Source: Octopus bimaculoides (Eukaryota). From it: a stretch of 64,000 nucleotides of DNA. The notes under the pieces were generated by a model that worked only from the letters and a program-made list of their open reading frames with translations, did not search any database and was not told where the DNA came from. The DNA lies in NCBI RefSeq assembly GCF_001194135.2, contig NC_068987.1, positions 24,298,581 through 24,362,580 of the forward strand, in the 5' to 3' direction. Positions 17,428 to 62,809 of this stretch are shown here, in pieces. The first letter of the stretch is position 1, and each line of letters starts with the position of its first letter. Position numbers and translations under genes: made by a program.

Positions 17428-18440
17428 ATCATTTATATATATTTTTACATATTTCTTATCGAGAAAATTTCTCTTTTAAATTTATTATTCTACTTCATCT
17501 GCATAATTCCTTCTCCTTGCAATAACCTGTTTTCTTTCGTCTTTATTTTTGCTTGTTTTCGTTTTCTCTGATTTTTCTCTTCATTTAAACTCCAGTTAAT
17601 ATTGTTTTCAAGGAGTAACGGCATTCTTTCGATATAGATATTTTGAGTATATTTTTGTTCTATTTCTTTAACCATGTTTTTTACTCTTGTTTTTATTCTG
17701 TAGTCCTCTCGAGGACTGATAGGCAGAAGTGTTGACTAAGAGAAAGAAGTTTAGATGTTTTACGAAATAGCGGCTAGACCCTACTTATTCTCATTACATG
17801 TGATTTGCCTAAAGTAAACCTAATCGGTTAATGTTTACGTCTTCGGATGACATTTTATTGTACAAACACCTTAAATATGAACAGTGATTCCTGTTCCTTA
17901 TAGCGAAACCCATCAGTCTTAGAATCTTGGACAACTTTGTGGCGGATGCAATTCAATACCTCCAAATTTGTATTCGCGACTTTTCGTGTTGTAAAGTTTC
18001 TTGGTTTTATAATACAAACTTTCTTTTAAAGTGATCTAAATTTAAACCTTCCATCAAACTTTCGTTTTAATTCATGTTACAAACATCAGCTTAATACTGA
18101 CAGTTATTTTACTAAATTCTTCATTATTTTAAAAATTAATCGAAACAATGGCAGTGCATTTCAAGAGACATTTGGTAAAGAGAGTTAATATTATTTTAAA
18201 CAGCATAAATCCCAATGAAGTATTTGATTAAAGGAAGTCAGGCATTTACTATGTAAAAGGTAACTATGAGGATAATAGTAGTGATAATGATTGTCTATCT
18301 CCTTTCAAATGACCGGCTCATAAGTCATATGTGATTGGAGGACTGGAAGAAGACATTCGGACGGAGTCAAAGTCTTGTAGACAAGAATTATGTTATTAAA
18401 GAACAGTTTATATTCTTTGTTGGTCATCAATGTAAGTTAC

Positions 18441-19825: not shown

Positions 19826-20803
19826 ATGAATAAAAAAGCAGAACCCCAAAATATTGATTCATCAGAAGAGAAATCACATTCTTGTGATATATGCAGAAAG
19901 TTATTCACAACAAAAAAGAATTTAATTCAACATAAATTAATCCATTCATTCTCTAATCTTCATCAGTGTGAAGTTTGTGGCAAAAGATTCACTGCAAACA
20001 ATTTATTTTCTCGCCATAAATGTAGTCATCCAGGAAAAAAACTGCACCACTGTGATATCTGTGATGAAAATTTTTCTTCAAGTGGCAGTTTATCTTCCCA
20101 CAAGCGAATTCACACAGGAGAGAAACCATACCACTGTGATATCTGTGATAAAAATTTCTCTCAGAAAGGTAATTTATCTACCCACAAGCGTATCCACACA
20201 GGGGAGAAACCATATCTTTGTGTAGTTTGTAACAAAGCCTTCTCTGATAGTCGTAGTTTATTTATCCACAAACGTATTCACACTGGAGAAAAACCATATC
20301 ACTGTGAGATCTGTACTAAATCATTTTCTACAAGGGGTCATTTAACTTGTCACATACGTATTCACTCGGGAGAGAAACCATACCACTGTGATATCTGTGG
20401 TAAAATGTTTTCTGGAAGTGGTGACTTGTCTTCCCACAAACGTATTCACACAGGGGAAAGACCCTATCACTGTGACCTGTGTGGTGAAACGTTTTCTAGA
20501 AATCGTAATTTAACTTATCACAAACGTATCCACACTGGGGAGAAACCATACCAATGTGATATATGTAATGAAGCATTTTCTACAAGGGGTCATTTGTCTT
20601 GCCACATACGTATTCATACAGGAGAAAGACCATATCACTGTGATACCTGTGGCAAGACTTTCTCTCAAAGTGGTCATTTCTCTCGACACAAACGTATTCA
20701 CACTGGTGAAAGACCATACCAGTGTGATATCTGTAATGAAAAATTTTCCAGAAGTGATAATTTAACTCAGCATAAACATATCCACACAGGAGAGAAATCA
20801 TAG
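19826..20803 (+). CDS. C2H2 zinc-finger protein ZNF3 (325 aa, 11 fingers)
   Basis: Intact ORF; aaagttATG start context shared with paralogues. Confidence 0.94.
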
Positions 20804-28984: not shown

Positions 28985-29128
28985 TTCTCTAGTGATTAAG
29001 GGGAAATTGTTCGAGTATAGAACTCTCTAGTGATTAGAGGGGAAATTGTTCGAGTATAGAACTCTCTAGTGATTAGAGGGGAAATTGTTCGAGTAAAGAA
29101 CTCTCTAGTGATTAGAGGTGAATTATTT
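28985..29128 (+). repeat. 39-bp minisatellite, about 3.5 units
   Basis: ctctag starts at 28987, 29025, 29064, 29103; unit actctctagtgattagaggggaaattgttcgagtataga. Confidence 0.95.
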
Positions 29129-29308
29129 CAGCAAAGTTACTGTTATTTCCTTTTTATCTCAACTTCGGTCTCTCCTTCCCTTCAGATATCAATATATTTT
29201 TTTCTTGCGTTGTTAGTAATAATTCACTTAAGAAATTGTCCATTAACCAGAAGATAATAGAGATATATCTCCCATTATTTCATCTTATTACTATAGTGTT
29301 AAGTAAGT
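29100..29308 (+). promoter_or_regulatory. Predicted ZNF4 promoter and non-coding exon 1 (donor GTAAGT at 29303)
   Basis: TGATTAGAGG, cattaaccagaaga...aatagagata and cccattatttcat motifs shared with 37966-38260, 52069-52322 (minus) and 53475-53783. Confidence 0.65.
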
Positions 29309-31735
29309 ATTATAGATTTTGCACATTTCTTTTATACAAAATCTCTTCGTTCATACATCATTCCTACTTTCTCCATGATTCTGTATTTCTCATAGATAAT
29401 CCAGTTTCCCGGATATGTATTTTATATTTATTCTTATTCTTTCAGCTCTCATTTTATACTTACTCTACCGTGTTTTCTTATTCCAGGTTCCTTTTTGTTT
29501 AATAAATATACACCTAACATTTGTGTATTAAACAAATATGTTGCTACAGTAAATAGTTTACAAGTCCGAGGGCGCCAATGACATGGTCTGTGAACGTTGC
29601 TCACATATCTAGGTGAATTAGCAACAATTATGAGTGGCACGGATTCAGAACGTGCTAATGTTAAGTCCTGCAAAAAATATATCAATAAAAACTTTATTCT
29701 GCTTTTATGAATACTATAAGATTTCTTTGAGACCCAAATCAGATAAAAGTTTAGGAAGCCTCAAGATTAATCGAAAAAAAAATGTGCAACCGGTGTAAAA
29801 AAAAAAAAANNNNNNNNNNNNNNNNNNNNNNNNNNNNNNNNNNNNNNNNNNNNNNNNNNNNNNNNNNNNNNNNNNNNNNNNNNNNNNNNNNNNNNNNNNN
29901 NNNNNNNNNNNNNNNNNNNNNNNNNNNNNNNNNNNNNNNNNNNNNNNNNNNNNNNNNNNNNNNNNNNNNNNNNNNNNNNNNNNNNNNNNNNNNNNNNNNN
30001 NNNNNNNNNNNNNNNNNNNNNNNNNNNNNNNNNNNNNNNNNNNNNNNNNNNNNNNNNNNNNNNNNNNNNNNNNNNNNNNNNNNNNNNNNNNNNNNNNNNN
30101 NNNNNNNNNNNNNNNNNNNNNNNNNNNNNNNNNNNNNNNNNNNNNNNNNNNNNNNNNNNNNNNNNNNNNNNNNNNNNNNNNNNNNNNNNNNNNNNNNNNN
30201 NNNNNNNNNNNNNNNNNNNNNNNNNNNNNNNNNNNNNNNNNNNNNNNNNNNNNNNNNNNNNNNNNNNNNNNNNNNNNNNNNNNNNNNNNNNNNNNNNNNN
30301 NNNNNNNNNNNNNNNNNNNNNNNNNNNNNNNNNNNNNNNNNNNNNNNNNNNNNNNNNNNNNNNNNNNNNNNNNNNNNNNNNNNNNNNNNNNNNNNNNNNN
30401 NNNNNNNNNNNNNNNNNNNNNNNNNNNNNNNNNNNNNNNNNCGCGGGACTTATAGCTTTTTTATTTGCAATATTTTCAAGCAAATAAATGTACCTCTGGG
30501 GTATTTTATATGATATTTAAAATGTAGCCAAAATTAGTGAGTTATATACAAAAATAACTTGACTGTCTTCAATGGCCGAAACGAATAAGGTAATTGTTAA
30601 AAGTGTTATTTATTGTTGTTTTCATTTCTCTTTCCTTTTAATCTGAATATGCTGCAAATCGGATCTTTCTGATTTGGCGGACACCATTTGTTTTCTAACG
30701 AAACACTTTCAAACTTGGGACACTGGTAGAATGTGTCATATAAAACATCTTTTACTCTTAGTGTTGTTGAGAAAAGTTTATATTTTTAAAGTTACTTTGT
30801 CTTAAAATTGTATTTCAGTAATTTTAACCAATCACTGACGTCTATTGGGGTGAAAACAATTACTTCTGTGGATTGTTAACAACACGTTGTGGCGGTGTAA
30901 TGGGACTCAAAACGGTTGATTGCCCATTTTCTCTTTGATTGAACAAATTAGAATATATATTCCCAAAATATTATGTTTATTTAACACGTACGTCTTATCA
31001 GAGGTAAGTCGAAAGGCTTCGTTGAATGATGGGCTGCTAAGATGTGCTTGTGGTTCCCTTTGTATCCTGTTTTAGCAACCATTTATGTACATTTTATTAT
31101 TGTGTGCATCGAAGTTTGGTAATTTGGGACACACAATCACATATCTAATTTATTGAATCATTGAAAAATAGACTAAGGCAGATCATGGCTTGTCGCTACT
31201 AGCATACGGACTGGAACTTGTTCAACCCCATTTGGGTCATACGGAAGACAGGTCAGGATTGTGTGTTGACAGAATCGAGACATCTTAAGATCACATGAAC
31301 ATCTGTCTTTGTTATAGTCATATATATGTCTAGCATAAGACTGATGTTTTCATCATCATCGTTTTAATGTCCGCTTTTCAATGCCCGCATGGATCAGATG
31401 ACATTTGTTGATGCAGATTTTCTAAGGCTGGATGCTTTTCCTGTTAGCAACTCGTTTTCATGGAAAATTGGAAACAAAGGAAAACCCTTTTATGAGAGTG
31501 ACACTCATTTACAACTGTTACGCAATGTCAACACATACATGCACATCTATTTACTCAACAGGCTTCTTTCAGTTTCAATGTACCAAATCCACTCATAAGG
31601 CGTTTTTTTAGCTTAGGGCTTTGGTACAATGCACTTGCCACACAAGTAAGACTGAACCTGGAACCATGTATGTGGGAAGCGAACCCTATGCCTAATCAAA
31701 CTTTGGGCCGAATGAAGTAATCTAGTTAACATGTT

Positions 31736-37372: not shown

Positions 37373-37965
37373 TTTATCTGTAAACTCTCTTCGTTGTTAA
37401 TTATTTTTTTCTTAACTCTGAAACTGTATAAAGAAACCGTTTCTGTTCAAAGCGAGACTAATTCGTCACCCGGTGTAACATCCTCATCCTATTATTTTAC
37501 TCGTAATTGTTCATTTTAGTTACCTTACAAAAGTAAATAAAAATGAAAGGGGAGATAAGTCAACTTTTTACGCCCAATTTGCTTTGTTTACAGTTGACAA
37601 GGCGTGCTGTCACGCACAAAATGACAGCTTCCAAATCCTGTTTCCTGATTGGGTGAAAATTATTAATCTTTAAGCCTCTGTAACTTTTTTAAAACATTTT
37701 TCTACCAAAAGTGAAAGAACTGCAGCAATTTACCTTGGAAATGTACACTTTTGTGTCAAATTTTAAAATTTTCGATAAACTTTAATTTTTGAAATGCTTG
37801 TAGCCAAACCAACTCGAACCATTACAGAACCGTTAGATGTTAGTGCCGAACATACAGCGAAGTATTGGTCTTTCGTCCAATGCATTACTCTTTTATCAAC
37901 GAGTCTTATTGGCCTTCTGTGTTTCGTACAGTTTACCTCTCCTTTCCTAAATAAATCGTAAAATG

Positions 37966-38259
37966 CTCTCCAATGATTAGAGGCGAGATTTTTCAATACG
38001 AACAATGCCACTTCCGGTATATCGCCCTCTTTGAATCTATAAACATTTTAGATATATTATTCCATTGTTGTAAATATTTACACTGTTAGTAATATCTCAT
38101 TCACTCCTGTGGCTAATTGAATTGAGGAATTGTACATTAACCAGAAGACGACAATAGAGATATCCTGTAAGAAGTTGAAAGTTCTCATCAATCTGTCCTC
38201 TTTAATATTCAAGCCTCACTACTTCAGTGCACCTCTCATTATTTCATTGTTATGCAAGT
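37966..38259 (+). promoter_or_regulatory. Predicted ZNF5 promoter and non-coding exon 1 (GCAAGT donor at 38254)
   Basis: ctctccaaTGATTAGAGG 37966-37983, ACTTCCGG 38010-38017, cattaaccagaagac, ctctcattatttc. Confidence 0.68.
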
Positions 38260-38959
38260 ATTATTTATATGGATTTCGCACATTTCTTGTATACAGAATT
38301 TCTCTTTTATATTCATTTCTAATACTACACCATTTCTACTCCCTGCAAAATCATATTTTTCTATTCTCTGTTCGTATTTACTCTTCTTCGACCTCCCTTC
38401 ATTTAAAATTTGGAATCAAACTTGTTTTCAGGATATATCGTAATTTTTTTCACTCTACTCCTTTATCATTTCTATACATATTATTTTCTCTTGCTTCTTA
38501 TTCTTAGTGTTGCCCTCTAGAAAATATAGTCTTGCGTCATGCAGAGTTTATTATGGAATAAACAGCAACTTTAAATAAACTTAGTCACGTGCAAGTACAC
38601 CAAATATATCTCACAATATGAACATGCCTTGCAATATACAGTATTTATAGATAATGGTTTCGCACTTTGTTATAAAGCTAATATCTTCATAGGATACCTT
38701 TACTATATGTTTGATACTGTTGATGCATTTGCTGTTCTGCGTCTCTATTGCAAGTGCTTCTTATACAAGGCGAGTCACTACCGCTGACTGGGTACCGTTA
38801 CTACTTTTACACCTTCTCCCCTCATCAAATAGCTCAAGTTAAGATATGATTTGGTCTGCATTAGCCAAAGCTTCAATCTCATTTCTAGCAGTGTTTGCAG
38901 CTGGCATCACAAAATTTGTCCTGTGTGGTATTGAATCGTTATTCTTTTTATGATACTTC

Positions 38960-46767: not shown

Positions 46768-46807
<40 letters not shown>

Positions 46808-47013
46808 ATACGTTTGTGTGTCTGTGTTTGTCCCCCCAACATTGCTTGACAACTGATGCTGGTGTGTTTACATCCCTATAATCTAGCAGTTCGGCAAAAG
46901 AGACCAATAGAATAAGTACTAGGCTTACAAAGAATAAGTCCTGGGGTTGATTTGCTCAACTAAAGGCAGTGCTCCAGCATGGCCACAGTTAAATGACCAA
47001 AAGAATAAAAGAA
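46607..47013 (+). mobile_element. SINE family A, full length
   Basis: A-box-like tggctgtgtcgt, B-box-like ggttcagtccc, ccttggacaagtg core, internal microsatellite, (aaagaat) tail. Confidence 0.85.
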
Positions 47014-47015
47014 TA

Positions 47016-48299
47016 TCATTGATGGGGTTTCTTCTTTGAGTGAATATGTCTATGTGAAGACAAATTAGATCTTTGAGAAAATGTTTTACCACAGATATCA
47101 CAGCAGTATGGTTTTTCTCCTGTGTGGATGCGTTTGTGGGAAGATAAATTAACACTTTTGGAAAATGATTTATCACATATATCACAATGGTATGGTTTTT
47201 CTCCTGTATGAATATATTTATGGCATGATAAATGACCTCTTTGAGAAAATGTTTTACCACAGATATCACAGTGGTATGGTTTCTCTCCTGTGTGAATATG
47301 TTTGTGGCAAGACAAATGGCCAATTCTAGAAAATGTCTCACCACATATATCACAGTGATATGGTTTCTCTCCTGTATGGATACGTTTGTGAGAAGATAAG
47401 CAGCCACTTTGGGAGAACGTTTTGCCACAGATGTTGCAATCATATGGTTTCTCTCCTGTGTGGATGCGTTTATGGGAATATAAATTACTACTTCTAGCAA
47501 ATGTTTTGCCACAGATAGCACAGGGGTATGGTCTCTCTCCAGTATGAATATATTTGTGTTGAGATAAATGACCACTTTCAGAGAATGTTTTACCACAGAT
47601 ATCACACTGATATGGCTTTTCTCCAGTGTGAATGCGTTTGTGTCGAGACAAATGAGCACCTCTAGAAAATTTTTCACCACAAACATCACAAGCATAAGGT
47701 TTGTCTCCTGTGTGAATACGCTTATGTTCAGATAAGTAACCCCTCTGACAAAATGTTTTACCACAGGTATCACAGTGATATGGTCTTTCTCCTGTGTGAA
47801 TATATGTATGACGAGATAAATGGCCCTTTTGAGAGAATGTTTTGCCACAAATATCACAGTGATATGGTTTCTCACCAGTGTGAGTGTGTTTGTGTTGAGA
47901 TAAATGTGAATTTCTAGAAAATGTTTCACCACATATATCACAATGGTAAGTTTTTTCTCCAGTGTGAATTCGCTTGTGTTCAGATAAATGACCCCTTTGA
48001 GAGAATGTTTTACCACAGCTGTCACAGTGGTATGGTCTCTCTCCAGTATGAATACGTATATGGTGCAATAATACATTGCTTGTAGTGAATATTTTACGAC
48101 AAACCTCACAATGGTATTGCTTTGACACTGAGTGAATTAATTTATGCTGATTTAAACTATTTTCTACTGTAAATAACTTCCCACAGATGTCACAACAGAG
48201 CGATTTCTCTTCTGTATTTTCCTGTATCTGATTAAATATATCAATAGTTTCAGTTTCTTTTCTACTCATAACCAGGTTATCACATAATTTCTCCTCCAT
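47016..48299 (-). CDS. C2H2 zinc-finger protein ZNF6 (427 aa, 14 fingers), the only minus-strand member
   Basis: Intact ORF; aaagtcATGG start context. Confidence 0.94.
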   Translation of the reverse strand: MEEKLCDNLVMSRKETETIDIFNQIQENTEEKSLCCDICGKLFTVENSLNQHKLIHSVSKQYHCEVCRKIFTTSNVLLHHIRIHTGERPYHCDSCGKTFSQRGHLSEHKRIHTGEKTYHCDICGETFSRNSHLSQHKHTHTGEKPYHCDICGKTFSQKGHLSRHTYIHTGERPYHCDTCGKTFCQRGYLSEHKRIHTGDKPYACDVCGEKFSRGAHLSRHKRIHTGEKPYQCDICGKTFSESGHLSQHKYIHTGERPYPCAICGKTFARSSNLYSHKRIHTGEKPYDCNICGKTFSQSGCLSSHKRIHTGEKPYHCDICGETFSRIGHLSCHKHIHTGEKPYHCDICGKTFSQRGHLSCHKYIHTGEKPYHCDICDKSFSKSVNLSSHKRIHTGEKPYCCDICGKTFSQRSNLSSHRHIHSKKKPHQ

Positions 48300-48584
48300 G
48301 ACTTTCTCTTTAAATTTCCTGTTTTCTTTGTATATTCATAATAGAAATATATCTATATCTATATTTACTTTCCCTCTCTGATGGCCTTTACCAAAGTCTG
48401 ATGATGTCTCAGCTACTAAGAAATATTTTCCAGTAAACATTTGTGTACTTTCACAAATAATGCCAACTCCAAGGAAATATTTTACATCCATTAAACTGAA
48501 GGCTGACATTAGCTTTATAAATACATTTCTAGTCTTCAAACTTTGATCCTCTGATCCTTCAGTGATATATTTTTATCTCAATGC

Positions 48585-48645
48585 CATCAGGTAACCTGAA
48601 ATTATAACACAACATAGGATATTAGGGATAATGAAATGTTAACAA
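48585..48645 (-). other. Predicted splice acceptor of the ZNF6 coding exon (exon from 48595 downward)
   Basis: Minus strand cctatgttgtgttataatttcag|gttacctgatggcattgag. Confidence 0.7.
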
Positions 48646-48913
48646 AGGTTATTGGAGAGAGGATATTTGAGTGCAGATATTGAAAGTTAGAAGAAGCATA
48701 ATATATTTACAGGGAAAAGACACTGTGGCAGTATAAATATATGGGAGGAAATGAATAATGAAGACATTGAAAAATGACCACTGGTCACTATGACATCAAT
48801 CTCTGCAATTAATTCAGATATTTTTATAAAGATAAGAATTATCTTTCTCATCATCAGCCATTGTATACACAGATCATATGAAGGCTAAGTATAGTAACAG
48901 CTAATATACTGCA

Positions 48914-50180
48914 ATGACAGCCATGATATTTAAAGAAAAACCATATGATGAAATAATACGTGGATTAGATTTCGTCTACACCTATATTGACAATATTCTC
49001 ATCGCTAGTTCTTCTGAGAAAGAACATGAGATTCATTTGAAGCAACTTTTTGAAAGGCTTTCTCAATATAAAATTCATATGAACGCTACCAAATGTATTT
49101 TCGATGTGCCTTCTCTCACTTTCCTTGGACACACCATTGATAAGAATGGAATAAGGCCTTTGCCAGAAAAGGTTGAGGCTATAATTCCAGTTCCCATTTC
49201 ATTAAGACAGCCCAGACAATTTATCAGATTAGCTAATTATTATCGACGTTTTATACCTCATTGTGCTGAAACTTTATACTCTCTCAACAAATTACTGCAA
49301 CACCGCAAGAAGAGAACAGAAAACATTACTTTAATTCTTGCAGAAATAAAAGCTTTCAACAATATTTAACAGAAACTCTCTCATGTCACCATGTTAGCTC
49401 ACCCCATTCCTAATGCCGAAATTCCTCTTGTAGTCAACGCGTCCGAAATTGGTGCCGGCGCAGTCATTCAACAACTCCACCATGGTGAATGGCAACCTCT
49501 AACATTTTGTCTCTAAGCAGTTAAAACCAGCTGAAACTAAATATAGCACATTCAGTCGTGAACTGTTAGCTATTTACCTCTCAGTTAAACACTTCCAACA
49601 CATTTTGGAAGGAAGAAACTTCACAATATTTACGTATCATAAGCTGTTATCTTTTGTTTTACACTGCAAGCCAGATAAATTTTCCCCGAGTGACATTCAA
49701 CATTTGGATTACATTTCCCAAGTCACGAGTGATATACAATATATTCCAGGTTCTGAGGAGATTGTTGCAGATTCTTTATCCCGTTTACCTGTAAACACGT
49801 TATTTTCAACTGCAGAAATTAACTTGGACGAAATGTTGGAAGATTAACCATCCGTTGATTTGAATAATATACAACAACCAGAATTAATTCCTTTCGACCT
49901 CCAATTTTTCCCAGTTGCGACATCAAACAAACAGATCCTTTGTGATTTTTCTTCTGGTAAACCTCGCCCTTTAGTTCCTGAAAAGCATTGCCGTATCGTT
50001 TTCTCAGCACTACACAATATCTCACATCCAGGTATAACAGCAACATTGAAGCTTATTACAGCTCATTTCGTTTGGCCAAACATTCGTTGAGACATAACTA
50101 ATTGAACTTGTACCTGTGTTGATTGTCAAAAATCCAAGGTACATAAACATATATTATCACTACATAAATTGGTGACCCCT
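48914..50180 (+). mobile_element. Gypsy pol fragment: RT, RNase H, integrase H2C2 domain (frameshifted)
   Basis: YIDNILIAS, FLGHTI, YYRRFIP, ETKYSTFSRELLAIY, LHNISHPG...FVWP, CVDCQKSKVH. Confidence 0.9.
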
Positions 50181-51188
50181 AGGCAGAATTAACATTACAA
50201 TAATGAAAACAACAAAGATGTATTCATCATAAGATGTCAAACTTTAGAAACAATATCACAGTTCAAATGTAATAAATGTTTGTTATTTTTTGGGCCAATA
50301 CACATGTCTACTCCTTTTGGTAGTCTGAGTTTGTGAAGTTGTGTGTAAAGGACATGTTTGTAATGCTGTGTGTGTGTGTTGTCTGTAGTGGGGTTGGAAA
50401 TAGTTTTTTCTATGCGAGCCCTTTTTAGTCTGTCAACAGAAATAGTGCCTTTACAACCATTAAGGTCTAAAGTGAAAACTCTATCTGCGTAAGAAAGCAC
50501 ACGCAAAGGTCCTGCATACGGTGCTGTTAAAGGATGTTTAATGGCATCGTTACAAACAAAAACATGAGTCCAGGATGAATAGTCTTTAGGCAAATATGTA
50601 TTAATGTCTTGTTTTCTGGTGTTCATATGTGGTAACTTTGACATATAATCACACAAGCGTTCAACGAAATTTGTAGTGTCGATATCTTGTGTGTTTGCAA
50701 GAACAATCATCTGACCGGGCAGTGTCAAGGAAGAACCATAAAGTAATTCTGCAGGAGAATATCCAATATCTTCATTGATAGAAGAGCGGAGACCCAAGAG
50801 AACAATAGGAAGAAATTCAATCCATAGAGATGAATCAGCAGAAGCACACAACACAGCTCTAAGCTGTCGGTGAAATCTTTCGATCATACCATTCGAAGCT
50901 GGGTGGTAACTAGTTGAATGGATGTGTTTACTTCCTAAAATCTTCGTTAGTTCCTGGAAGAGTTTAGCTTCAAATTGACGTCCGCGATCTGTTGTTATTT
51001 TAACAGGTGTTCCGAAACGAGAAATCCATCCTGTGACTAAAGCTTGTGCCACAGTTCGAGAAGAGATGTCTGTGAGTGGAATGACTTCTGGCCAGCGTGA
51101 AAAACGATCAATACAAGTTAATAAAAACGTGTAGCCCTGACTTCCAGGCCAAGGTCCTACTACATCAACATGTATGTGCTGGAATCGT
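50181..51188 (-). mobile_element. Gypsy integrase core and 3' region, inverted relative to the RT part
   Basis: [56 protein letters not shown]. Confidence 0.9.
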
Positions 51189-51286
51189 NNNNNNNNNNGT
51201 TTGTCGTCTGTTTTAGGGTTAGTGTTGGGGAAAAAAGTCAAAATTGAAGAAGTTGGGGGGAGGGGGGAAATTTGCACAATGCCGAT

Positions 51287-51378
51287 TTTTGGCAATCTTC
51301 CGGAACCTCCGTATCCGAAAACGGGGATTTTTGGCAATCTTCCGGAACCTCCGTATCCGAAAACGGGGATTTTTGGCA
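51287..51378 (+). repeat. 42-bp tandem repeat, about 2.2 units
   Basis: gatttttggcaatcttccggaacctccgtatccgaaaacggg twice, plus a partial unit. Confidence 0.92.
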
Positions 51379-52068
51379 AAACAAAAAAAAAATTACAAAA
51401 ATAAACAAATTTGGGAGAAAATGGGGGTGGGAGACGGGCAGAATTCTTTCCAAAATATATTTTATGTAATAAATATACAGTTCCTAAATTTATTCTTCTC
51501 TGTAAGAATTCCTATAAGATACATGCAGCTTTTCTAAACATATATTCACACTACAAAATCATTTATAAAATATTGGAAAGATAAAGTTTTCTGAAACTAT
51601 TTACTACAAATTTGAAACACTGCTAATAATACATCTGAATGTCTCAGTAACAGCAAGAAGCCGAAAACCCGAACACCCCAGTTACTGGATAGCTAGGAAA
51701 ATGGGGTTAACCATTTAACTGGAGCAACGACATAGAAATACTTGTTATTTACAAAACGAAATGTAAACATTGTTTGCGATGATGGGGAATAAAACTGAAC
51801 AACAAAAACGACCTGGATAAAATATAATACATGAGAGCTAACCCCTTGCGTGTTATTTTAAAATAAAATACATTTTCTGAAAACTAGATTAACTTACGGA
51901 TTTTAAAAGAATTAGAAAAACGTGAAAGAATGAAATAAAGTAATAATGAAGAGATAAAAAAAAAAAACAGGATCTTGAAGGGAGCAAGAATGGTGTAGAT
52001 GAAGTATGAATGTAAATATATAATAGAGATTTTGTATAAAAGAAACGTGTTAATTATATATAAATGAT

Positions 52069-52322
52069 ACTTACATAACTACTATGATGAGGACATTGAT
52101 AGACTGAGCAGAACTTCCAACTTTTCTTACAAAATATCTCTATTGTCTTCTTCTGGTTGATGAAAAATCTCATAAGTTTATTACAGGAGTTGATTAATTA
52201 TTACTAATAAAGTGTAAAGAAATAATGTAACTGTAATGTTTACGTATTTAATGAGGTGTGCGGTTGACATACCGGAAGTGACATTGGATTGTGTGGTAAG
52301 AACTTACCTCAAATCAATAGAG
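52069..52322 (-). promoter_or_regulatory. Predicted ZNF6 promoter and non-coding exon 1 (donor G at 52074)
   Basis: Minus strand ctctatTGATTTGAGGtaagttctt...cACTTCCGGtatgtcaac...catcaaccagaagaagacaatagagata...gttat|GTAAGTatcattt. Confidence 0.72.
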
Positions 52323-52417
52323 ATTTATTTATTTATTTTTCAGATTTTTCGTTTAGTTCTGCAAGTCGTAATTTGGCGTCCTCAAATTATTCAGTCACAC
52401 GGTAGAAGGAATAAAGA

Positions 52418-52600
52418 TCTGTGATGTCTGTTGTAAAACATTCTATAGAAGAAGTGTGATGTTAACATAAAAGCCATACCACTGGAATATCTGATAAAAT
52501 GTTTGCTAGAATTGCTGAGTACTACAGATCTATGGTAAAACATTTTCTAGAGATATTGAATTGTATTCACACAGGAGAAAAACAATAACATTCTCTCTAA
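52418..52600 (+). pseudogene. Decayed zinc-finger relic on the plus strand
   Basis: tgtgatgtctgttgtaaaacattc, aagccataccactg, ggtaaaacattttctaga, gtattcacacaggagaaaaa. Confidence 0.65.
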
Positions 52601-52614
52601 GTAGTACTTTATTT

Positions 52615-53173
52615 CGGTACTACTAAAGAAGAGTGGTCCCCAACGCGCGTCCGCGCTAGCTAGTCGTGAGTAGACGATCCTACAACAAGTGCGCGTATGC
52701 AAACTAGTGCATGCGCGCTCTTTTTACGGCTGAAATGGCTGAATATATATCAAAAATACCTTCTTTTTTTTGTAAACAAATATAATAATTAAACAAAGTA
52801 ATTAATTGACACACTACCTGTTTTTGTTAACTTCTAAACAACGTAAATAAATTAAAAAAACAAACAAATCGAATAAAAATAACACACTGCCTGTTTTTGT
52901 TAACTTCATACATTTTTTAAAATTAAATTTTTGTGAACAAAATAATAAATTTTTTTTTCTAAACAACATAAATAAATAAAAAAAAGCAAATCGACACAAA
53001 AAAAGGTATTTTTGATATATATTCAGCCATTTCAGCCGTAAAAGAGCGCGCATGCACTAATTTGCATACTCGCGCACGCGCACATGTATTCATTTACACA
53101 CGCGCACTTGTAGGATCGACCACTCCCGACTAGTTAGCGCGGACGCGACCACTCTTTTTTTTTAGTAGTACCG
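52615..53173. mobile_element. Palindromic MITE/foldback element with long imperfect inverted arms
   Basis: cggtactactaaa / tttagtagtaccg ends; tttttacggctgaaatggctgaatatatatcaaaaatacctt is mirrored at 53003-53044; no TSD found. Confidence 0.85.
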
Positions 53174-53474
53174 GAAAATTAATTTCGCATTACAGCTAGA
53201 TTATCAAGGATGCATTACTAAAACGAGAGATTCATTTAGTCCCAGATCAGAGTTTCTTAAATTTTCCCGTTCTTTCGTGTCTATTCCCCACTCCACGTCA
53301 AAGAAAAAAGTAGTTTTATATACGACAGTTTAGTAAATATTATTAGCAGCTTTAAAATCAACATTTTCTGTCCAAGCAGTACTTCGGTGTGAACATCGCT
53401 ATAATGTTTTTTTAACTATAGGTCCGCAGATTCAAAGAATACGAAGAGCAAAACACCACCTAAACTGTATAGCA

Positions 53475-53783
53475 CTCTCAGCTGTTTAGAGGCAAGTTCT
53501 TCTAATCAGTGACACTTCCGGTATGTTAACCTCCACACTTAAGTCTATAAACAATGTTGATATATTATTCTTTCTTTACACATATGTACAGTGTGAGTAA
53601 TAACTAATTAATTTCTGTAGTTAACTTAAGAGATTGTTCATTAACCAGAAGACAATAGAGATAGTCTATATGTAGTAGTTGAAAGTTCTGCTCAATCTAT
53701 CTATTTTCTCTTCTATTTCCAAATCATCACTACTTCACTACATCTCTCATTATTTCATCTTATAACTACATTGTTTTGTAAGT
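53475..53783 (+). promoter_or_regulatory. Predicted ZNF7 promoter and non-coding exon 1 (donor GTAAGT at 53778)
   Basis: ctctcagcTGTTTAGAGGcaagttctt, ACTTCCGG 53514-53521, cattaaccagaagacaatagagata, ctctcattatttcatc. Confidence 0.72.
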
Positions 53784-53944
53784 ATCATTCATAAAGATTT
53801 TACAGTTAATATATATTTGTCTCTTTTAAAAATCTTTGCTTTATATTTACAGTTTTTAATTTGTCTATCCTATTCTTGTTTCTTACAAAAATCTATTTCA
53901 TTCTTTAATTTCCATACATTGATTTAGTTTACACGAAATTTTTT

Positions 53945-53979
<35 letters not shown>

Positions 53980-54480
53980 TCTGTTTCAATCCCCTCCTTT
54001 ATTTTTTTTATCCCCGTTATTTATTCTTACTCTACGTCATTATTCAGTGTCCCCTTCAACAACATAGTTTTTCACACTGTCACAATTTTTGTCAGAGACC
54101 CAATCGCTACATTTCCGAGGGATCAGGTGATAACATGGTCAGTTAATTTATAGTGTATTGTTACACATCATTTTTGGATAATTGGAAATGTAAAGTCTTT
54201 TACCGGTGTTCCAATAAAACTGGAAACCGATCAAGTGCACTGAAACAAAACCTGTGGGTAAATATGGATGGAAAATCACTGTGCAGTGGGGGAATGCATA
54301 AACGTATCGTGGTTTATTTGAAATATCATAACGAAAACAATATTTTCTGGCGATCTTTGGCATTAAGTACATATAACTGCGGAATGGATAAATCGAGGAA
54401 AGTACAAGAATTAGTCTTGGGTATCTTGAGTAAATGAAACGAATGTGTAAATGCTTAGAAGTTATTACTATAGATTTCTC

Positions 54481-54700
54481 TAAGGCAGCGAGTTGGTAGA
54501 ATTGCAAGCACGTCGGACAAAATGCTGAATGGCATTTCGTCCGACTCTTTATGTTCGAAATTCTACCGAGATCAACTTCACCTTTTATTCTTTTTTGGTC
54601 GCTAAAGTAAGTTCCAGTTGAACACAGGAGTCGATGTAAGCGACAAACCCTCTGTAAAATTACTGGCCTTGTACCTTAATTTGAAACTATTACAGATTTT
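54481..54700 (+). mobile_element. SINE family B, diverged
   Basis: taaggcagcgagttggtagaatt...gttcgaaattctaccgagatcaacttcacctttt. Confidence 0.65.
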
Positions 54701-55428: not shown

Positions 55429-58291
55429 CCATATTTTAACATGTATAAGGAACCCTTTTTTGTCAAAAATTAGGTTAAAAAAATATAGGAGTTTCTTCTA
55501 CATGGATAGTATTATAGATATTAATAAATTACTTAATTGCTCGAACCTCAAATCTCTATGACTTAAACATCGCAAGCCTCAGACCAACACCCAACAGGTT
55601 GTGACGTCCTATTGGATGAGTTGCTATCCATTCGTCAAGCAACGGCATGCGCCTAAAGCAGCCATCACAAACGGCAATTGTCTGCCAAACAGTACTTACT
55701 TATGCTCACCGAGACTGTTAAATCCGTATTTTTGTATTAACATGACAGTTCTGTATTGTATTTAAAATTGCGAGTGAACACGCAAGTGCGAACATTAACA
55801 CTTTCTAAAAAACCCAGGCTGCTTATGGAGGTCATACAACCTATCAGAGACAGTAAGCCTGCTCAATAGCCATATATGACAATGCAGCTCACACTGAAAC
55901 AGGCATGAATGTAGCATAACCAAATATGGAAATTCAACTGAGACACACTCTTAGGTATTGTCTACTGTTATTTGAATTGATCCTGCATTACTCTTTTTAT
56001 AGATTTTTGTTTTCTATTAGCATAAAAATGTCTGAGAATAAAAAGTACATTTCATATCCTGCAAATTTCAAATTGAAAGTGATTCAGTTTGTAGAGGAGC
56101 ATGGAGATAAAGCTGCAGCAAGACAGTTTGAGCCTCCTCTTATGACTACCATGATTGGACTGTGGATAAAAGCACAAAGATGAACTTTTACAGATGCCAA
56201 GGATGAAGAGAGCAGCATGAGGCAAAAAGGCAAGGTGGCCAAATCTGGAGAGAAAACTCAAACACTGGGTCGAAAGCTGAAGGCAAACTGATGCATTTGT
56301 TTTGACAAAGATTCTAATCAATCAAGGAAGAAAAATTGCTCAGGAGATAAAAAGAACAAAGAGGAAGGGCAAGAGACAACTGATTTTAAAGGCATGCCCA
56401 TCTGGTGCTTCTGTTTTATGAAGAGGAATGGTTTAAATCTAAGGACTAGAACCAAGCTTGTTCAGAAGATGCTTGATGCTTATGAAGAAAAGATTCCTAA
56501 GTTTCATTCTTATATCATTAATTTACACAAGAATACCAACTTTGAACTTTGCCACATAGCAAATATGGATGAATTTCCATTTACCTTTGATGTTCCTTCC
56601 AACAAAACTGTGAATCAAAAAAAGGCTAAAACAGTGGCCATCAAGACAAGTGGACATGAGAAGACTCATTACACAGTTGTCCTGGCATACTGTACTGATG
56701 GTACCCAGCTGCCACCAATACTCATTTTCAAAAGAAAGACACTTCCAAAGGAGAAACTGCCAGAAGGAGTTCTTGTGCATGTTCATGCAATGGGCTGGAT
56801 GGATCAAGATGTTATGAAGATTTGGAGTAAGAGACCTGGGAACCTTTTTAAGAAGCCATCTACGCTGGTGTTAGATCAGTTCAGGGCACTTATAACTGAT
56901 ACAACATAAAAATTGGCAAAAGAAAAAATCAAAAACCCAATTGGCAGTTATTCCTGGTGGCCTGACAAGCCAACTTCAACCTCTGGACATCAGTAACAAC
57001 AAACCATTCAAGTGAAGTTTGGCTACGCGAAGAATTCGTGGAACGGTATGAAGAAAGAAGTGATTGTAAATGCCTTTAAAACGTGCGACATAAGCAACAA
57101 CATGGATGGTACAGAGGATAATGCAATTTACAATGAGGGTGACTCTGATGATAATGAACTACCAGTAGTTGTATCTGATTATGATGTATTAGATGAGAGT
57201 GATGAGGAATTTAATGGTTTCTATGATTAATAAAAAATATTTTTGATAAAACTTGTTAACTTGTGAAGATATTTATTAATATTCTTCTTAAGGGTATTTT
57301 ACAGTAAATTTTGATAAGTGCACCTGCACACATTTCACTAAGAAAAAAAAAAACCTTGGATTTTTTGCATGGAATCAAGTACCCTGACCTCCTAATGTGT
57401 CGCAATCCCCTTATTTTTTGGTCGGAAAAAAGTGGGGTTGGGAACCCTCCTTCTCATCCCGGAATCATTGGAAATTAATTTTTTTCATTGAATGAATTAC
57501 AGTGACCTTCTAATATGCTACAAAACACTTTTTGTTCTGAAAACGGAGGGTGGGGTGGAACTCTCAGAAATTTCAACCCCAACCCCAACATTTTACAGAA
57601 ATATGTTTTCAAGAGTGTAGATTACATAAAATTGAAAGTTTAAACAACTTTGAAAAGAATTGAAAATGCTGAAGTTATAGAAATTAGTGGTAACGACAAG
57701 AATGTATCCCCTGGAGAACTTTTGTGTTAGTGTGAAACAAGTAAAAGTATGATATTAAAACAAAATATCTTTTTCATACCTCTTAAAATCACTAGATATA
57801 TTAATCCCAGATTGCAGAATATATTCAAATGGTATCGAGTGTTTTATATATAAAAATAAAAAAATTCACTTTCTCTTTGCAAGTTTTCCCACCTGAAACT
57901 CGAATCGAGATTGAGAGAATTAGTTTTCTCTTTGTACTAAGAATCGATTTAAAATAACTATATCTTAAATGTTGTGTGAGGAAAGAAGTATATTCTAATG
58001 GGAAAATATTGTATCTTTTAAAAGCATCCAGAATTTACTATGCATTTGTTTGTGTGTGTTTATCATTTAAGATATTTTTAATTTCATTTATGTGTCTCCT
58101 TTCTTTCAAAGAAGGCCTTCTTTCTTTCTTACCATATCCATAGTCTCTCATCTCTCTCTCCCCACACAAAGATGAAATGCATTACCCGATAAGTGCGGCT
58201 GCACTTATCAGAATTTACCTAATCTCTTACAAATGCTTTTTTAAGCCTGCAAAATTTGGGGGTTCCTTATACACGAGGGTTTTTTATACAG
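55429..58291 (+). mobile_element. pogo-superfamily DNA transposon, decayed, with imperfect TIRs and TA flanks
   Basis: TA-ccatattttaacatgtataaggaaccc at the left; gggttccttatacacgag...atacag-TA at the right; transposase relic inside. Probably contains a secondary insertion at about 57340-58170. Confidence 0.65.
56028..57230 (+). pseudogene. pogo transposase pseudogene (Brinker-like DBD, CENP-B-type HTH, DDE_1)
   Basis: YPANFKLKVIQFVEEHGDKAAARQF; IANMDEFPFTFDVP; GHEKTHYTVVLA; LPPILIFK; GWMD; LVLDQFRA; VIPGGLTSQLQPLDIS.NKPFK; acidic tail; several stops and frameshifts. Confidence 0.88.
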
Positions 58292-60250: not shown

Positions 60251-61268
60251 TTATGAAAGGGTAACCAGAGTGGGTGGTGGGTATTTTGTTTGGATAACCA
60301 ATCTGGTCATAAAGAAAGAAAACCACACTGCACATAAATACATAAAAAGTATGTATGTTTACAGTTTTTGTCATTCAGTCTAAAGAGTGTGTACAAACAC
60401 TGGATAATACTTAAACCTTCTTTATAACTTACAAATAAAATTACATTTTGAGTATAAATAATAAAAATATGGAACTCTAGAATTCAAAGAAAAATGGCTT
60501 AACTACAAAAAATAATTTCATATATTCAGGAAGTTTACAGAATTCATCAAACAATTTATATAGATATAATTCAATGAGGTGGATGCTGGTTGTTATTTAA
60601 TGGAGGAAATATCCAGTCACTGTTGCTAATGTGCTTGTGTTTCTTTGTTTCTACCAGCAATTATATTTGAAAAAAGATGCATCAACTTAATGGCATTGGC
60701 TTTGTTTACTGCTTCATGCCACTCCATCAAATGTCATAAGCCATTGAAAGTTTTGTTAATGGGACTGGAAGAGGTTTTGATATTTAATTATCTTTATCAT
60801 CCACAGCATCTCTTCTTAGCTTGATTTTCTTATTAATGGTCCAAATGAAGTAATCCATTATGATGTGCATATATCTTTTTGTTTGCTTTGATCATGTGGA
60901 AGACAAAGATTTTAGGATGTTCTGGTAATTTTCTGTACAGCAAGCTATAATACCTAGAGTATCTCCATTTCAAGGTCTACATCAATAATCCTTATCACAT
61001 CTCTGGACTAAAAGTCTTTTCTTTGTAAACATCTTCTGACTCTTTCTTGCTATTCTAACTTTCTAAGAATATCTGAATGATATGCAAAGATTGATGTCTT
61101 AGTGATCTGCAGTCATTTTTTAATGCTATCATTCCTCAATCCATAACCATAGTCCTCGTTCATTTCCTCTATATTTCTACACCAAAGTACCTTCTCTCTG
61201 ATTCGTTCTTGCTATTCTAACTTTCAGTATCTGTGGTCAAATATATTCTCTCCAATAATCTTCATGTT

Positions 61269-61325
61269 AACACTTCATTGTCCCTTATGTCCTATGTTGT
61301 TTTTTTTATTTCAGGTTATTTGATG
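61269..61325 (+). other. Predicted splice acceptor of the ZNF7 coding exon (exon from 61315)
   Basis: acacttcattgtcccttatgtcctatgttgttttttttatttcag|gttatttgatgacattgag. Confidence 0.72.
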
Positions 61326-61723
61326 ACATTGAGATAAAAATAATTCACTGAAGAAGATCGACTTTTGAAACTGTAGCTTCATCAAGCTGATATCAGCCTG
61401 TTTCAACAACTCTTATTTGAAAGGATGTAAAATATTTCTTTGGAATTGAGATTATTTGCAAGAATTCCTACATTGTGGGGAAATTTTGTGGAAACATTAA
61501 GTTTATCAGATTTACCACAAGGTTTCAACTGACTTATTCGTAAGGGCTTTAATGTCTGGGTATATCTTGTCAACTGAAGCTAGTTTAATGATCTTATAGC
61601 TGCTGATTATTAATTACAAAATTCTATCCTTTTAAATCCACTTTAAGTTACTTTGAACACCCAAGACATCTTCAGTCTTTAATAAAGATCATCTACGTGC
61701 TAAATATAGATTAAAGTGAAGTT

Positions 61724-62809
61724 ATGGATGAGAAAGCACAACCTGAAATTACTGATTCATCTATTCAAATAAAGGGAAATAGAAGGGAAAAATCATACCC
61801 TTGTGATGTATGTGGGGAGGTATACACAACAAGAAGTAATTTAATGCAACACAAATTAATCCATGCAACCTCCAAGGTGCACTACTGTGAAGTTTGTGGT
61901 AAAGGATTCACTCGCAACAGTTTATTGACTCGCCATAAGCATATACATACAAGAGAAAGGCCATACCACTGTGATATCTGTGGTGAAAAATTTTCTAGAA
62001 GTGCTCATTTGTCTAGACACAGGCATATTCACACAGGAGAAAAACCATATCCCTGTGATGTCTGTGGTAAAACATTCTCTCAAAGTGGTACACTATCCAC
62101 TCATAAACATATTCATACAGGAGAGAAACCATATCAGTGTGATATCTGTGATGACAGATTTTCTACAAGGGGTCAATTGTCTAACCACAAACGTATCCAC
62201 ACTGGAGAAAGACCCTACCAATGTGATATTTGTAGTAAAACATTTTCTAGAAGTGGTCATTTGTCTTCCCATAAACTTATCCACACAGGTGAAAGGCCAT
62301 ACCAATGTGATATCTGTGATAAAACATTTTCTCGAAGTGGTGATTTGTCTTCTCACAAACATATTCACTCAGGAGAAAGACCATACCACTGTGATATCTG
62401 TGGTACGACATTCTCTCAAAGTGGTAGTTTATCTCAGCACAAACGTATTCACACTGGAGAAAAGCCCTATCAGTGTGATATCTGTGATAAAACATTTTCA
62501 ACAAAGAGTCATTTATCTTCCCACATACGTACTCACACAGGAGAAAGGCCCTACCATTGTGATATCTGTGGTAAAACATTCACTCAAAGTGGTAGTTTAT
62601 CTCAGCACAAACCTATTCACACAGGAGAGAGACCATACAATTGTGATATTTGTGGCAAAACCTTTTCTACAACTCGTAATTTAACTCGACACAAACGTAT
62701 TCACACAGAAGAGAAAGCATACCACTGTGATATTTGTGATGAAGCATTTTCTACAAGAGGTCGTTTATCTTCCCACATACGTATTCATACAGGAGAAAGA
62801 CCATCATAG
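61724..62809 (+). CDS. C2H2 zinc-finger protein ZNF7 (361 aa, 12 fingers)
   Basis: Intact ORF; gaagttATGG start context. Confidence 0.94.
   Translation: MDEKAQPEITDSSIQIKGNRREKSYPCDVCGEVYTTRSNLMQHKLIHATSKVHYCEVCGKGFTRNSLLTRHKHIHTRERPYHCDICGEKFSRSAHLSRHRHIHTGEKPYPCDVCGKTFSQSGTLSTHKHIHTGEKPYQCDICDDRFSTRGQLSNHKRIHTGERPYQCDICSKTFSRSGHLSSHKLIHTGERPYQCDICDKTFSRSGDLSSHKHIHSGERPYHCDICGTTFSQSGSLSQHKRIHTGEKPYQCDICDKTFSTKSHLSSHIRTHTGERPYHCDICGKTFTQSGSLSQHKPIHTGERPYNCDICGKTFSTTRNLTRHKRIHTEEKAYHCDICDEAFSTRGRLSSHIRIHTGERPS

Follow-up and report, generated by a model that had tools for sequence, protein, structure and literature searches.

The DNA analysed here, a window of 64,000 nucleotides from CM046607.1 of Octopus bimaculoides, lies within a cluster of C2H2 zinc-finger (ZNF) genes. 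Two of these genes, ZNF6 (minus strand) and ZNF7 (plus strand), are head-to-head neighbours, and the region from one coding exon to the other contains the following features.

47016-48299, minus strand: ZNF6 coding exon (ORF), encoding a C2H2 poly-zinc-finger protein of 427 aa
52069-52074, minus strand: ZNF6 GTAAGT splice donor, read from the sequence as the reverse complement
52075-52331, minus strand: predicted ZNF6 promoter and non-coding exon 1 block (profile match 52343-51861, E 3.7e-110)
52271-52280, minus strand: ZNF6 ETS-type site, CACTTCCGGT on the sense strand of ZNF6
52358-52616, plus strand: left spacer, a decayed C2H2 finger array (nhmmer; ~4.5 units, interrupted by stop codons and shortened by internal deletions)
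52616-53172, no strand: foldback MITE of 557 bp with termini GGTACTACT...AGTAGTACC and no coding capacity
53173-53474, no strand: right spacer, unique sequence
53475-53777, plus strand: predicted ZNF7 promoter and non-coding exon 1 block (block-profile match, E 3.2e-125)
53513-53522, plus strand: ZNF7 ETS-type site, CACTTCCGGT on the sense strand of ZNF7
53778-53783, plus strand: ZNF7 GTAAGT splice donor, read from the sequence
61724-62809, plus strand: ZNF7 coding exon (ORF and Pfam), encoding a C2H2 poly-zinc-finger protein of 361 aa

The window covers a portion of a tandem C2H2 ZNF cluster, and the locus is an ordinary one. Both genes are called in GCA_001194135.2, with an identical protein in the case of ZNF6, whose product matches the Pfam families zf-H2C2_2 (3.5e-108) and zf-C2H2 (1.7e-60). 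As in the lineage-specific C2H2 ZNF clusters of cephalopods and other metazoans (PMC12513265; PMC10547256), we find a tandem poly-zinc-finger array with strong sequence turnover, decayed fingers after stop codons, transposon-rich introns and mixed gene orientation, and there is no essential difference between those clusters and this one. Decayed fingers extend beyond the stop codons of ZNF1, ZNF2, ZNF5 and ZNF7; the ZNF6 array stops abruptly, its last unit ending at 47020 with no significant fingers beyond. From the sequence we infer that genes of this local subfamily consist of two exons, a short non-coding exon 1 and a single exon with the full coding sequence, separated by an intron 1 of 1.8-7.9 kb that is full of transposon debris; its GTAAGT donor is kept in all copies of the block, and candidate acceptors lie 20-60 nt 5′ of the ATGs. 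A search with the full-length ZNF6 protein returned no octopod protein among the 120 matches listed, in which long vertebrate ZNFs dominate; an 84-aa N-terminus used as protein query gave no orthologue candidate, and a profile of five N-termini recovered octopod proteins at 40-49% identity only, none of them orthologous. An exact-sequence cluster look-up found 0/3 ZNF proteins, and Rfam over 51500-54500 produced one sub-threshold chance match and nothing else.

The original prediction of an inverted promoter/exon-1 pair is borne out by alignment: 52086-52316 on the minus strand and 53483-53713 on the plus strand are 71.7% identical over 244 nt (E 2e-28), with a local alignment score of 149 as against 19.6 ± 2.7 in dinucleotide shuffles, and an inverted-repeat search of the window recovered the pair as arms I1, I5, I11 and I12. 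The same block stands 5′ of ZNF5, ZNF6, ZNF7 and ZNF8, each time on the strand of its own gene, and degenerate copies are present at ZNF4 and ZNF3. Each copy of the block comprises an ETS site, the non-coding exon 1 and the GTAAGT donor. The two ETS sites that had been predicted are likewise present: the 64 kb contain just three exact copies of the 10-mer ACCGGAAGTG, at 38009 (minus), 52271-52280 (plus) and 53513-53522 (minus), always inside a block copy (those of ZNF5, ZNF6 and ZNF7) and nowhere else in the window. Allowing one mismatch or none yields 6 matches versus 1.22 expected, a number that 0/100 shuffles reach. The ETS core, CCGGAAGT, lies at the presumed transcription start, and is conserved among the ZNF5, ZNF6 and ZNF7 paralogues; other octopod ZNF loci, 163 kb in all, contain it a single time. 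We infer that a TATA-less core promoter in the block, equipped with a single ETS-type site (CACTTCCGGT), drives exon 1, the TSS, exon 1 and promoter activity being predicted. This shared arrangement is an ordinary feature of the ZNF subfamily; an ETS promoter with a non-coding exon 1 is not described in the cephalopod C2H2 paper PMC12513265, whose text contains neither "promoter" nor "exon".

The block is defined by paralogue conservation only, and it might instead be a fragment of a repeat element that has hitch-hiked on tandem duplications. We consider this most unlikely. The block was not found in seven other octopod ZNF loci (163 kb) and is therefore no dispersed repeat; it always lies 5′ of a ZNF coding exon and on the same strand, terminates in a conserved splice donor, contains the exact ETS core-promoter motif, and is conserved where the adjoining spacer and the intron interior are not. 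For a stem at exon 1/intron 1 that had been spotted by eye there was no RNAalifold prediction, and a sigma-70/terminator scan, irrelevant to a eukaryote, returned only sub-palindromes inside the MITE arms.

Homology between ZNF6 and ZNF7 is not confined to the promoter. The 3′ end of ZNF6 intron 1 (48454-48839, minus) matches 61052-61458, in inverted orientation and 5′ of the ZNF7 coding exon, at 69.4% over 428 nt, and the entire gene unit is therefore paralogous. Together with the block alignments, this supports a head-to-head pair of paralogues, each equipped with its own promoter/exon-1 block. ZNF6 and ZNF7 are not mutual closest relatives. All paralogue blocks are mutually 68-76% identical, with values of 73.0% for ZNF6-ZNF7, 76.3% for ZNF5-ZNF7 and 74.2% for ZNF5-ZNF6, so that by block identity ZNF7 is nearer to ZNF5; in the N-terminal coding sequence, identity is 70.1% for ZNF6-ZNF7 versus 75.5% for ZNF3-ZNF7.

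Bidirectional promoters, as a class (Collins et al. 2007, PMC2077898), are defined by TSSs that lie on opposite strands and are separated by less than 1 kb. The ZNF6/ZNF7 region resembles the ETS/GABP-type members of this class in that divergent genes carry an ETS core (CCGGAAGT) at each presumed start. It differs in that there are two separate, duplicated promoters rather than one shared segment, and in that the region is AT-rich rather than a CpG island. The inner edges of the ETS sites, used with predicted TSSs, are 1,232 bp apart and so exceed the 1 kb limit; without the MITE the ETS-to-ETS distance is 675 bp, inside the class.

The element between the two promoters had been described as a CpG-rich foldback, and both parts of that description are correct. 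It spans 52616-53172 with an axis at 52894.0; its arms share 87.8% identity across 148 ungapped columns, the right arm having an extra 29-nt segment, and when folded as DNA it reaches -157 kcal/mol (z = -20). The arms, at 52616-52770 and 52995-53172, are CpG-rich, and the core is AT-rich with internal direct repeats; CpG observed/expected reaches 1.84 for the element as a whole and 1.44 and 1.77 for its two arms, compared with 0.44 in the window. The largest ORF, of 79 aa and low complexity, lies inside the AT-rich core. The element thus combines the features that define MITEs, namely terminal inverted repeats, small size without coding capacity, and dispersed copies sharing its termini, and these observations support its identification as a real MITE-type element. 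The 9-mers that abut it, CTTTATTTC and GGAAAATTA, match at 3/9 positions and form no clean duplication; a possible displaced target-site copy, TTTATTTCG / TTAATTTCG, matches at 8/9 positions and lies 6 nt outward on the right (53179-53187). The sequence AGTAGTACTTTATTTC to the left of the MITE, which has a similar flank at one other locus (L008), was considered as an outer part of the element and rejected because it aligns to positions 18-47 of the finger-unit profile (E 0.002-0.016).

Related copies were found in ZNF loci, the only kind of locus sampled (~163 kb), of O. vulgaris, O. sinensis and O. bimaculoides. Four octopod ZNF loci (L003, L006, L007 and L008) contain members of the family, amounting to three or four complete copies, one that an insertion has divided, and two partial copies, all with termini GGTACTACT...AGTAGTACC and all with CpG-rich arms. 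The terminal inverted repeats are long, composite and variable, from ~77 nt (L003) to ~155-178 nt (the copy in the window), with a sub-palindrome within each arm. At three of these complete copies the 9-bp flanks are target-site duplications (TSDs), matching at 9/9 (L007, GAAATATAG), 7/9 (L003) and 7/9 (L006, 12872-13074). The other copies are in or near ZNF genes, in a sample restricted to ZNF loci, and occupy introns and intergenic DNA without evident relation to promoters. No second copy is present in the window plus an 8.8-kb extension, a metagenome scan with the MITE terminus gave 0 hits, and no MULE or Phantom transposase element with these termini occurs within the octopod ZNF loci sampled. 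Maize Mu elements have ~215-bp terminal inverted repeats and 9-bp TSDs and insert into open chromatin, with Mutator-type elements preferring open chromatin at gene 5′ ends (PMC2774946), and Foldback-like elements with 9-bp TSDs have been grouped with Mutator/Phantom (PMC3169594). By TSD length and the architecture of the inverted repeats, the two characters on which the assignment is based, the MITE family is Mutator/Foldback-like, a classification shown by the family and probable for the copy in the window. Like maize Mu (PMC2774946) and the root-knot nematode element Tm1 (PMC3169594), the family shows 9-bp TSDs and consists of short, non-coding derivatives with sites near gene 5′ ends; unlike them, the window copy has no clean duplication.

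The spacers on either side of the MITE proved to be as unrelated as they had seemed at first inspection. Aligned as reverse complements they score 17, compared with 19.4 ± 2.5 for shuffles, and 466/500 shuffles are equal or better. The left spacer is occupied by a finger relic antisense to ZNF6, detected with a profile of 65 finger units taken from the window. Its nhmmer matches at 52528-52588 (E 2.6e-8) and 52420-52457 (E 4.2e-6) are joined by weak colinear pieces at 52358-52408, 52487-52518 and 52587-52616, and by BLAST it matches ZNF coding sequence, the best DNA matches being spread over ZNF2, ZNF3, ZNF6 and ZNF7. Across 72.8 kb, nothing else that resembles a finger lies outside the seven genes. 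The right spacer has no BLAST relative in the window and no nhmmer finger match at E<10 on either strand. The two spacers differ in origin, the left being a decayed plus-strand finger array and the right unique sequence. The relic stops exactly at the left end of the MITE, and no continuation was found past the element in empty sites reconstructed with three choices of right boundary. A simple insertion is therefore insufficient to account for this boundary, and a flanking deletion or a second break is needed.

We propose that the locus holds a rearranged pair of ZNF paralogues into which a transposon was later inserted, and we regard this as the probable history. A rearrangement, not a palindrome, would have placed ZNF6 on the minus strand, so that the promoters point apart. 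The original prediction had named inversion or palindrome-seeded inverted duplication as the source of the arrangement; of these, a rearrangement that flipped ZNF6, whether by inversion or by inverted insertion, is retained, and palindrome seeding is not, given the unrelated spacers. The trace of the rearrangement would be the decayed plus-strand finger tail that directly adjoins the ZNF6 promoter on its 5′ side, in antisense orientation, and its position immediately upstream of the promoter would put the junction at ~52332-52357. Most economically, a single gene would have been inverted, with one break just 5′ of its promoter and a second within the 3′ portion of its finger array, so that the terminal fingers stayed in place. 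The abrupt end of the ZNF6 array at 47020 speaks for this history. Against it, the putative break ends are poorly matched in finger phase and are placed by weak hits (E 0.02-0.9). Recombination between two MITE copies, as a cause of the inversion, was considered and rejected, as the window and its extension contain one copy.

Insertion of an inverted paralogue into an older gene would have the same appearance. Under this alternative, a reverse-oriented copy extending from promoter to coding exon entered an older plus-strand ZNF of which only the last fingers survive. The spread of best matches, by which the relic cannot be assigned to ZNF6, speaks for this alternative, as does the lack of complementarity between the phases of the ZNF6 3′ end and the start of the relic, and mixed gene orientation is common at other octopod ZNF loci. 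However, such a history requires more events than one inversion, and no other remnant of a disrupted gene, whether promoter block, intron ends or fingers, is present in the 72.8 kb. We consider inverted insertion possible but rather unlikely.

Whichever form the rearrangement of the paralogue pair took, the MITE was probably inserted afterwards, in a promoter-to-promoter spacer of ~675 bp, bringing the ETS-to-ETS distance to its present ~1.23 kb. The element is probably younger than the ZNF6/ZNF7 pair, because its arms are 88% identical as against 72-73% for the blocks and its CpGs are undecayed. Its presence between two promoters is unsurprising, since Mutator-type elements favour open chromatin at 5′ ends.

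The position of the MITE within the spacer is nearly central. The axis of the ETS pair, at 52896.5, is 2.5 bp from that of the element, and the gaps from ETS site to MITE are 335 and 340 bp. For uniform insertion in the 675-bp pre-insertion spacer, the probability of a difference of 5 or less is 6/676 = 0.009, or roughly 0.02 by hand count with the displaced-TSD boundaries of the MITE. A chance of ~1% counts against reading the centring as coincidence. The coincidence was spotted after the fact, and the centring appears only with the ETS sites as landmarks: the axis of the splice donors, at 52926, is 32 bp from the MITE axis. The near-central position is best read as coincidence, and the earlier caveat that the symmetry may be due to chance turns out to be the better reading, the spacers being unrelated and the MITE a member of a dispersed family.

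It is conceivable that the centring is not accidental, and that the MITE was targeted to the midpoint of a nucleosome-depleted region of divergent promoters or was kept as a putative shared regulatory element or boundary. The fit to within 2.5 bp, a CpG observed/expected ratio of 1.4-1.8 inside a CpG-depleted genome, the Mutator-type preference for open chromatin at 5′ ends (PMC2774946), and the location of other family copies in or near ZNF genes, within a sample of ZNF loci, are all compatible with such a role. Yet those other copies, located in introns or between genes, show no evident link to promoters, CpG richness belongs to the arms of the family everywhere and not to this locus, and the donor axis does not share the symmetry. 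We judge a non-accidental position improbable, and we hold it very improbable that an element targeted to or retained at the midpoint of the divergent promoters would now, through its CpG-rich, hairpin-forming arms, uncouple or co-ordinate them as a putative boundary or shared element.

The idea of a palindrome around the MITE, in which the foldback hairpin at a break or stalled fork led to reverse copying of the flank and a mirror-image ZNF6/ZNF7 pair, does not survive testing and is extremely unlikely: a very strong foldback amid promoter blocks that are inverted copies, at nearly equal distances (gaps of 335 and 340 bp, expected of a mirror copy and otherwise a ~1% chance), recalls fold-back (hairpin-primed) inverted duplications, but the spacers carry no reverse-complement similarity, the position that mirrors the left relic (E 2.6e-8) is empty on both strands at E<10, the genes are not sisters, the MITE arms (88%, CpGs intact) seem younger than the blocks (72-73%), presumably under constraint themselves, and the MITE is an ordinary member of a dispersed family. 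ZNF6/ZNF7 thus departs from such duplications in having no mirrored homology at its centre, sides that differ in content, non-sister genes and a centre apparently younger than its arms, and the MITE loses the place it had been given as the meaningful centre of a palindrome-seeded inverted duplication.

The importance of these results beyond annotation is small. The gene model of this octopus ZNF subfamily, with an ETS promoter, a non-coding exon 1, a long intron and a single coding exon, should aid the annotation of the many cephalopod ZNFs whose present models are poor. A Foldback/Mutator-like MITE family with 9-bp TSDs is common to three Octopus species and is frequent near ZNF genes, in a sample drawn from ZNF loci. 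With a promoter adjoining a leftover finger array, the junction of what was probably a gene flip can still be read, and the ZNF6/ZNF7 locus offers a small worked example of how mixed orientation arises in ZNF clusters.

ZNF6 and ZNF7 lie head to head in an AT-rich window (GC ~34%) whose seven C2H2 poly-zinc-finger coding exons are all on the plus strand except that of ZNF6; at other octopod ZNF loci, mixed gene orientation is common. Both proteins are called genes in GCA_001194135.2 (chromosome CM046607.1, ~24.34-24.36 Mb), an assembly that also carries proteins that NCBI names Octopus bimaculoides. Runs of N, representing assembly gaps, occur at window ~8.5-9.0, 14.2-14.8 and 29.8-30.4 kb, with a short one near 51.2 kb, and the long X-residue reading frames in the ORF list are artefacts of such runs. 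The original prediction, that the promoter/exon-1 blocks of the two genes form an inverted pair with ETS sites, was borne out: 52086-52316 and 53483-53713 share 71.7% identity over 244 nt (E 2e-28; local alignment score 149, shuffles 19.6 +/- 2.7), and both copies terminate in GTAAGT. The ETS 10-mer ACCGGAAGTG is exact in both and occurs three times in 64 kb, in each case within a block copy; the axis of the ZNF6 and ZNF7 sites is 52896.5. A block-profile search of the window and the sequence just past its end located these copies, listed after the sole minus-strand ZNF coding exon of the window:

47016-48299, minus strand, ZNF6 coding exon
37947-38458, plus strand, full block of ZNF5
52343-51861, minus strand, full block of ZNF6
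53456-54000, plus strand, full block of ZNF7
71528-72056 (L002 19805-20333), plus strand, full block of 'ZNF8', just past the window
29092-29389, degenerate block of ZNF4
17417-17618, degenerate block of ZNF3

Each copy precedes, by 1.8-7.9 kb, a ZNF coding exon on the same strand. Conservation sets in ~40 nt 5′ of the ETS site, includes a near-invariant 25-nt stretch (TTAACCAGAAGA..AATAGAGATA) and ends slightly beyond the conserved splice donor. The final 250-450 nt 5′ of each coding exon are also conserved among paralogues, inverted between ZNF6 and ZNF7, with candidate splice acceptors 20-60 nt 5′ of the ATGs. Since no copy was found among other octopod ZNF loci totalling 163 kb, the block is not a dispersed repeat. 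We infer, from conservation only, a subfamily whose members would start from an ETS-type core promoter and consist of a non-coding first exon, a long intron and one coding exon. Promoters and exon structure receive no mention in one cephalopod C2H2 paper (PMC12513265). The same 163 kb holds one CCGGAAGT core, at L005 7222-7229 on O. bimaculoides chromosome CM046629.1; it lies 2.8 kb 5′ of a plus-strand ZNF coding exon, oriented as in the window blocks and with possible GT donors downstream. Its surroundings show no sequence similarity to the block, and the L005 gene may represent a second subfamily with a like promoter design.

The exon-1 donor reads GTAAGT in ZNF4, ZNF6 and ZNF7 and GCAAGT in ZNF5 (window 38250 region) and ZNF8 (L002 ~20140), where it could mark either GC-AG introns or first exons in decay. 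In the ZNF4 block the ETS site is gone, as is the larger part of exon 1, and that of ZNF3 retains only the exon-1 end and intron start; the two may be genes in decay or be driven by other promoters. A conserved motif of exon 1, AATAGAGAT..., has its complement ~25-50 nt into intron 1, and the 5′ splice site would lie enclosed by the predicted stem (ZNF6, window 52022-52044 and 52122-52144; equivalent positions, ZNF5 ~38150-38300, ZNF7 53655-53830 and ZNF8 L002 ~20000-20160). Duplex energy was better than that of shuffles for ZNF6, ZNF5 and ZNF7 (0/500, 13/500 and 14/500 shuffles doing as well) and not clearly better for ZNF8 (74/500) and ZNF4 (108/500). By eye, paralogues differ in parallel in both arms; RNAalifold did not predict the stem. 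Introns of the subfamily hold retroelement and DDE-transposase debris, found in the first-intron stretches 48914-49369 (plus), 50237-51379 (minus) and 56394-56909 (plus):

ZNF6 first intron, reverse transcriptase RVT_1, E 2.8e-10
ZNF6 first intron, integrase rve, E 1.5e-14
ZNF7 first intron, DDE_1 endonuclease fragment, E 3.3e-5

At the 5′ end of an integrase-like ORF, a perfect 42-bp tandem repeat (51284-51379, 2.3 copies) encodes the repeated peptide PKIPVFGYGGSGRL.

The CpG-rich foldback predicted near the centre of the pair is also real. It spans 52616-53172 (axis 52894.0), reaches -157 kcal/mol when folded as DNA (z = -20), has arms 87.8% identical, lacks coding capacity and shows a CpG o/e of 1.4-1.8 against a window average of 0.44. 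A GC-rich sub-palindrome, GCGCGTATGCAAACTAGTGCATGCGCGC, lies inside each arm (52691-52718 and 53050-53069), and 29 nt of this region are locally duplicated in the right arm. The termini, GGTACTACT...AGTAGTACC, and CpG-rich subterminal sequence recur in three Octopus species, and the window element is a long member of the family. Copies outside the window are listed here, with the match between 9-bp flanks for the four complete elements:

O. vulgaris L003 15323-15609, flanks matching 7/9
O. vulgaris L006 10338-10538, flanks 3/9, chimeric, with the left end of one subfamily and the right end and flank of another
O. vulgaris L006 12872-13074, flanks 7/9
O. sinensis L007 19138-19341, family copy
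O. sinensis L007 19877...20499 (19877-20499), flanks 9/9, GAAATATAG, split by a later insertion
O. bimaculoides L008, at 7096, one end only

The two L006 elements, 2.5 kb apart, have the right arm and right flank in common, and the chimera suggests that MITEs of ZNF clusters undergo recombination or contain duplication breaks. The insertion splitting the L007 element contains GGCCATGCTGGAGCA, a repeat motif common in octopus that also adjoins the ZNF6 3′ end (~window 46970-46985). Abutting flanks of the window foldback match at 3/9, with no clean duplication; an 8/9 match (TTTATTTCG / TTAATTTCG) is displaced 6 nt outward on the right. Elements of the Foldback/Mutator (Phantom) type, MITE-like derivatives included, are characterized by 9-bp target-site duplications and by inverted repeats that are long and composite (PMC3169594; PMC2774946). 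The foldback fits the definition of a MITE and, in its structure, that of Foldback/Mutator elements.

How the genes came to lie head to head is suggested by the spacers, which, in agreement with the first observation, show no homology as reverse complements (score 17, shuffles 19.4 +/- 2.5). A DNA profile built from 65 finger units of the window identified in the left spacer (52358-52616, plus strand) a colinear, frameshifted and partly deleted finger array (E 2.6e-8, 4.2e-6 and three weak colinear pieces); apart from it, 72.8 kb show finger-like sequence only within the seven genes. In the right spacer the profile matches neither strand at E<10, and the window contains no relative of this spacer. 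Because the relic begins within ~25-30 bp of the outer limit of homology between the ZNF6 block and its paralogues (52331-52343), and is antisense to ZNF6, a rearrangement junction probably lies at this boundary. At its other end the relic stops mid-finger (profile position 47) exactly at the MITE left terminus and continues to the right in no empty-site reconstruction; taken with the lack of an abutting duplication, this points to a deletion, or another break, at the MITE right edge.

The simplest model is inversion of one gene, in which one break would fall just 5′ of the promoter and the other in the 3′ part of the same gene's finger array, so that the flipped promoter would now border the fingers that its gene left behind. 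In line with this, the ZNF6 array ends abruptly at 47020, with unrelated sequence beyond it at 46800-47015, and the reading frame closes within a degenerate linker (HIHSKKKPHQ*, 47016-47020); in ZNF1, 2, 5 and 7, decayed fingers continue for 160-600 bp beyond the stop. Speaking against the model, the relic is not assignable to ZNF6 specifically, and finger phases at the two inversion ends fit poorly, the matches that define them being weak. Alternatively, a paralogue may have been inserted in inverted orientation into an older gene.

That the pair is a structural palindrome with the MITE at its centre is not supported, the spacers being of different origin; an equal-age mirror copy should retain a comparable minus-strand relic, and the right spacer has none. 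Nor are ZNF6 and ZNF7 sisters: their blocks are 73.0% identical, below the 76.3% of ZNF5-ZNF7, the top value among pairs at 68-76%, and the N-terminal coding region agrees. The foldback looks younger than the gene pair, since its CpGs are undecayed and its arm identity is 88%, against 72-73% for the blocks, which are presumably under constraint. Spacing is the sole remaining point for a meaningful centre. Foldback-to-ETS gaps are 335 and 340 bp, a centring expected under uniformly random insertion with P = 0.009, or roughly 0.02 by hand estimate with displaced-TSD boundaries; it was spotted post hoc and holds for the ETS landmark only, the splice-donor axis being 32 bp away. Mutator-type elements favour open chromatin at gene 5′ ends (PMC2774946); an insertion between two promoters is thus to be expected, and we judge its exact-middle position a coincidence. 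The divergent pair, the MITE and some inversion-type event are supported, the centre of symmetry is not, and an insulator role of the MITE is hypothetical.

On the criteria tested, the locus does not resemble a fold-back inverted duplication. The pair is like ETS-type divergent gene pairs (PMC2077898) and, unlike a strict bidirectional promoter, comprises two separate duplicated promoters, 1.23 kb apart now and 675 bp pre-insertion. The locus is ordinary, and pair and foldback belong to known kinds; the subfamily gene model would be a small annotation gain and no surprise.
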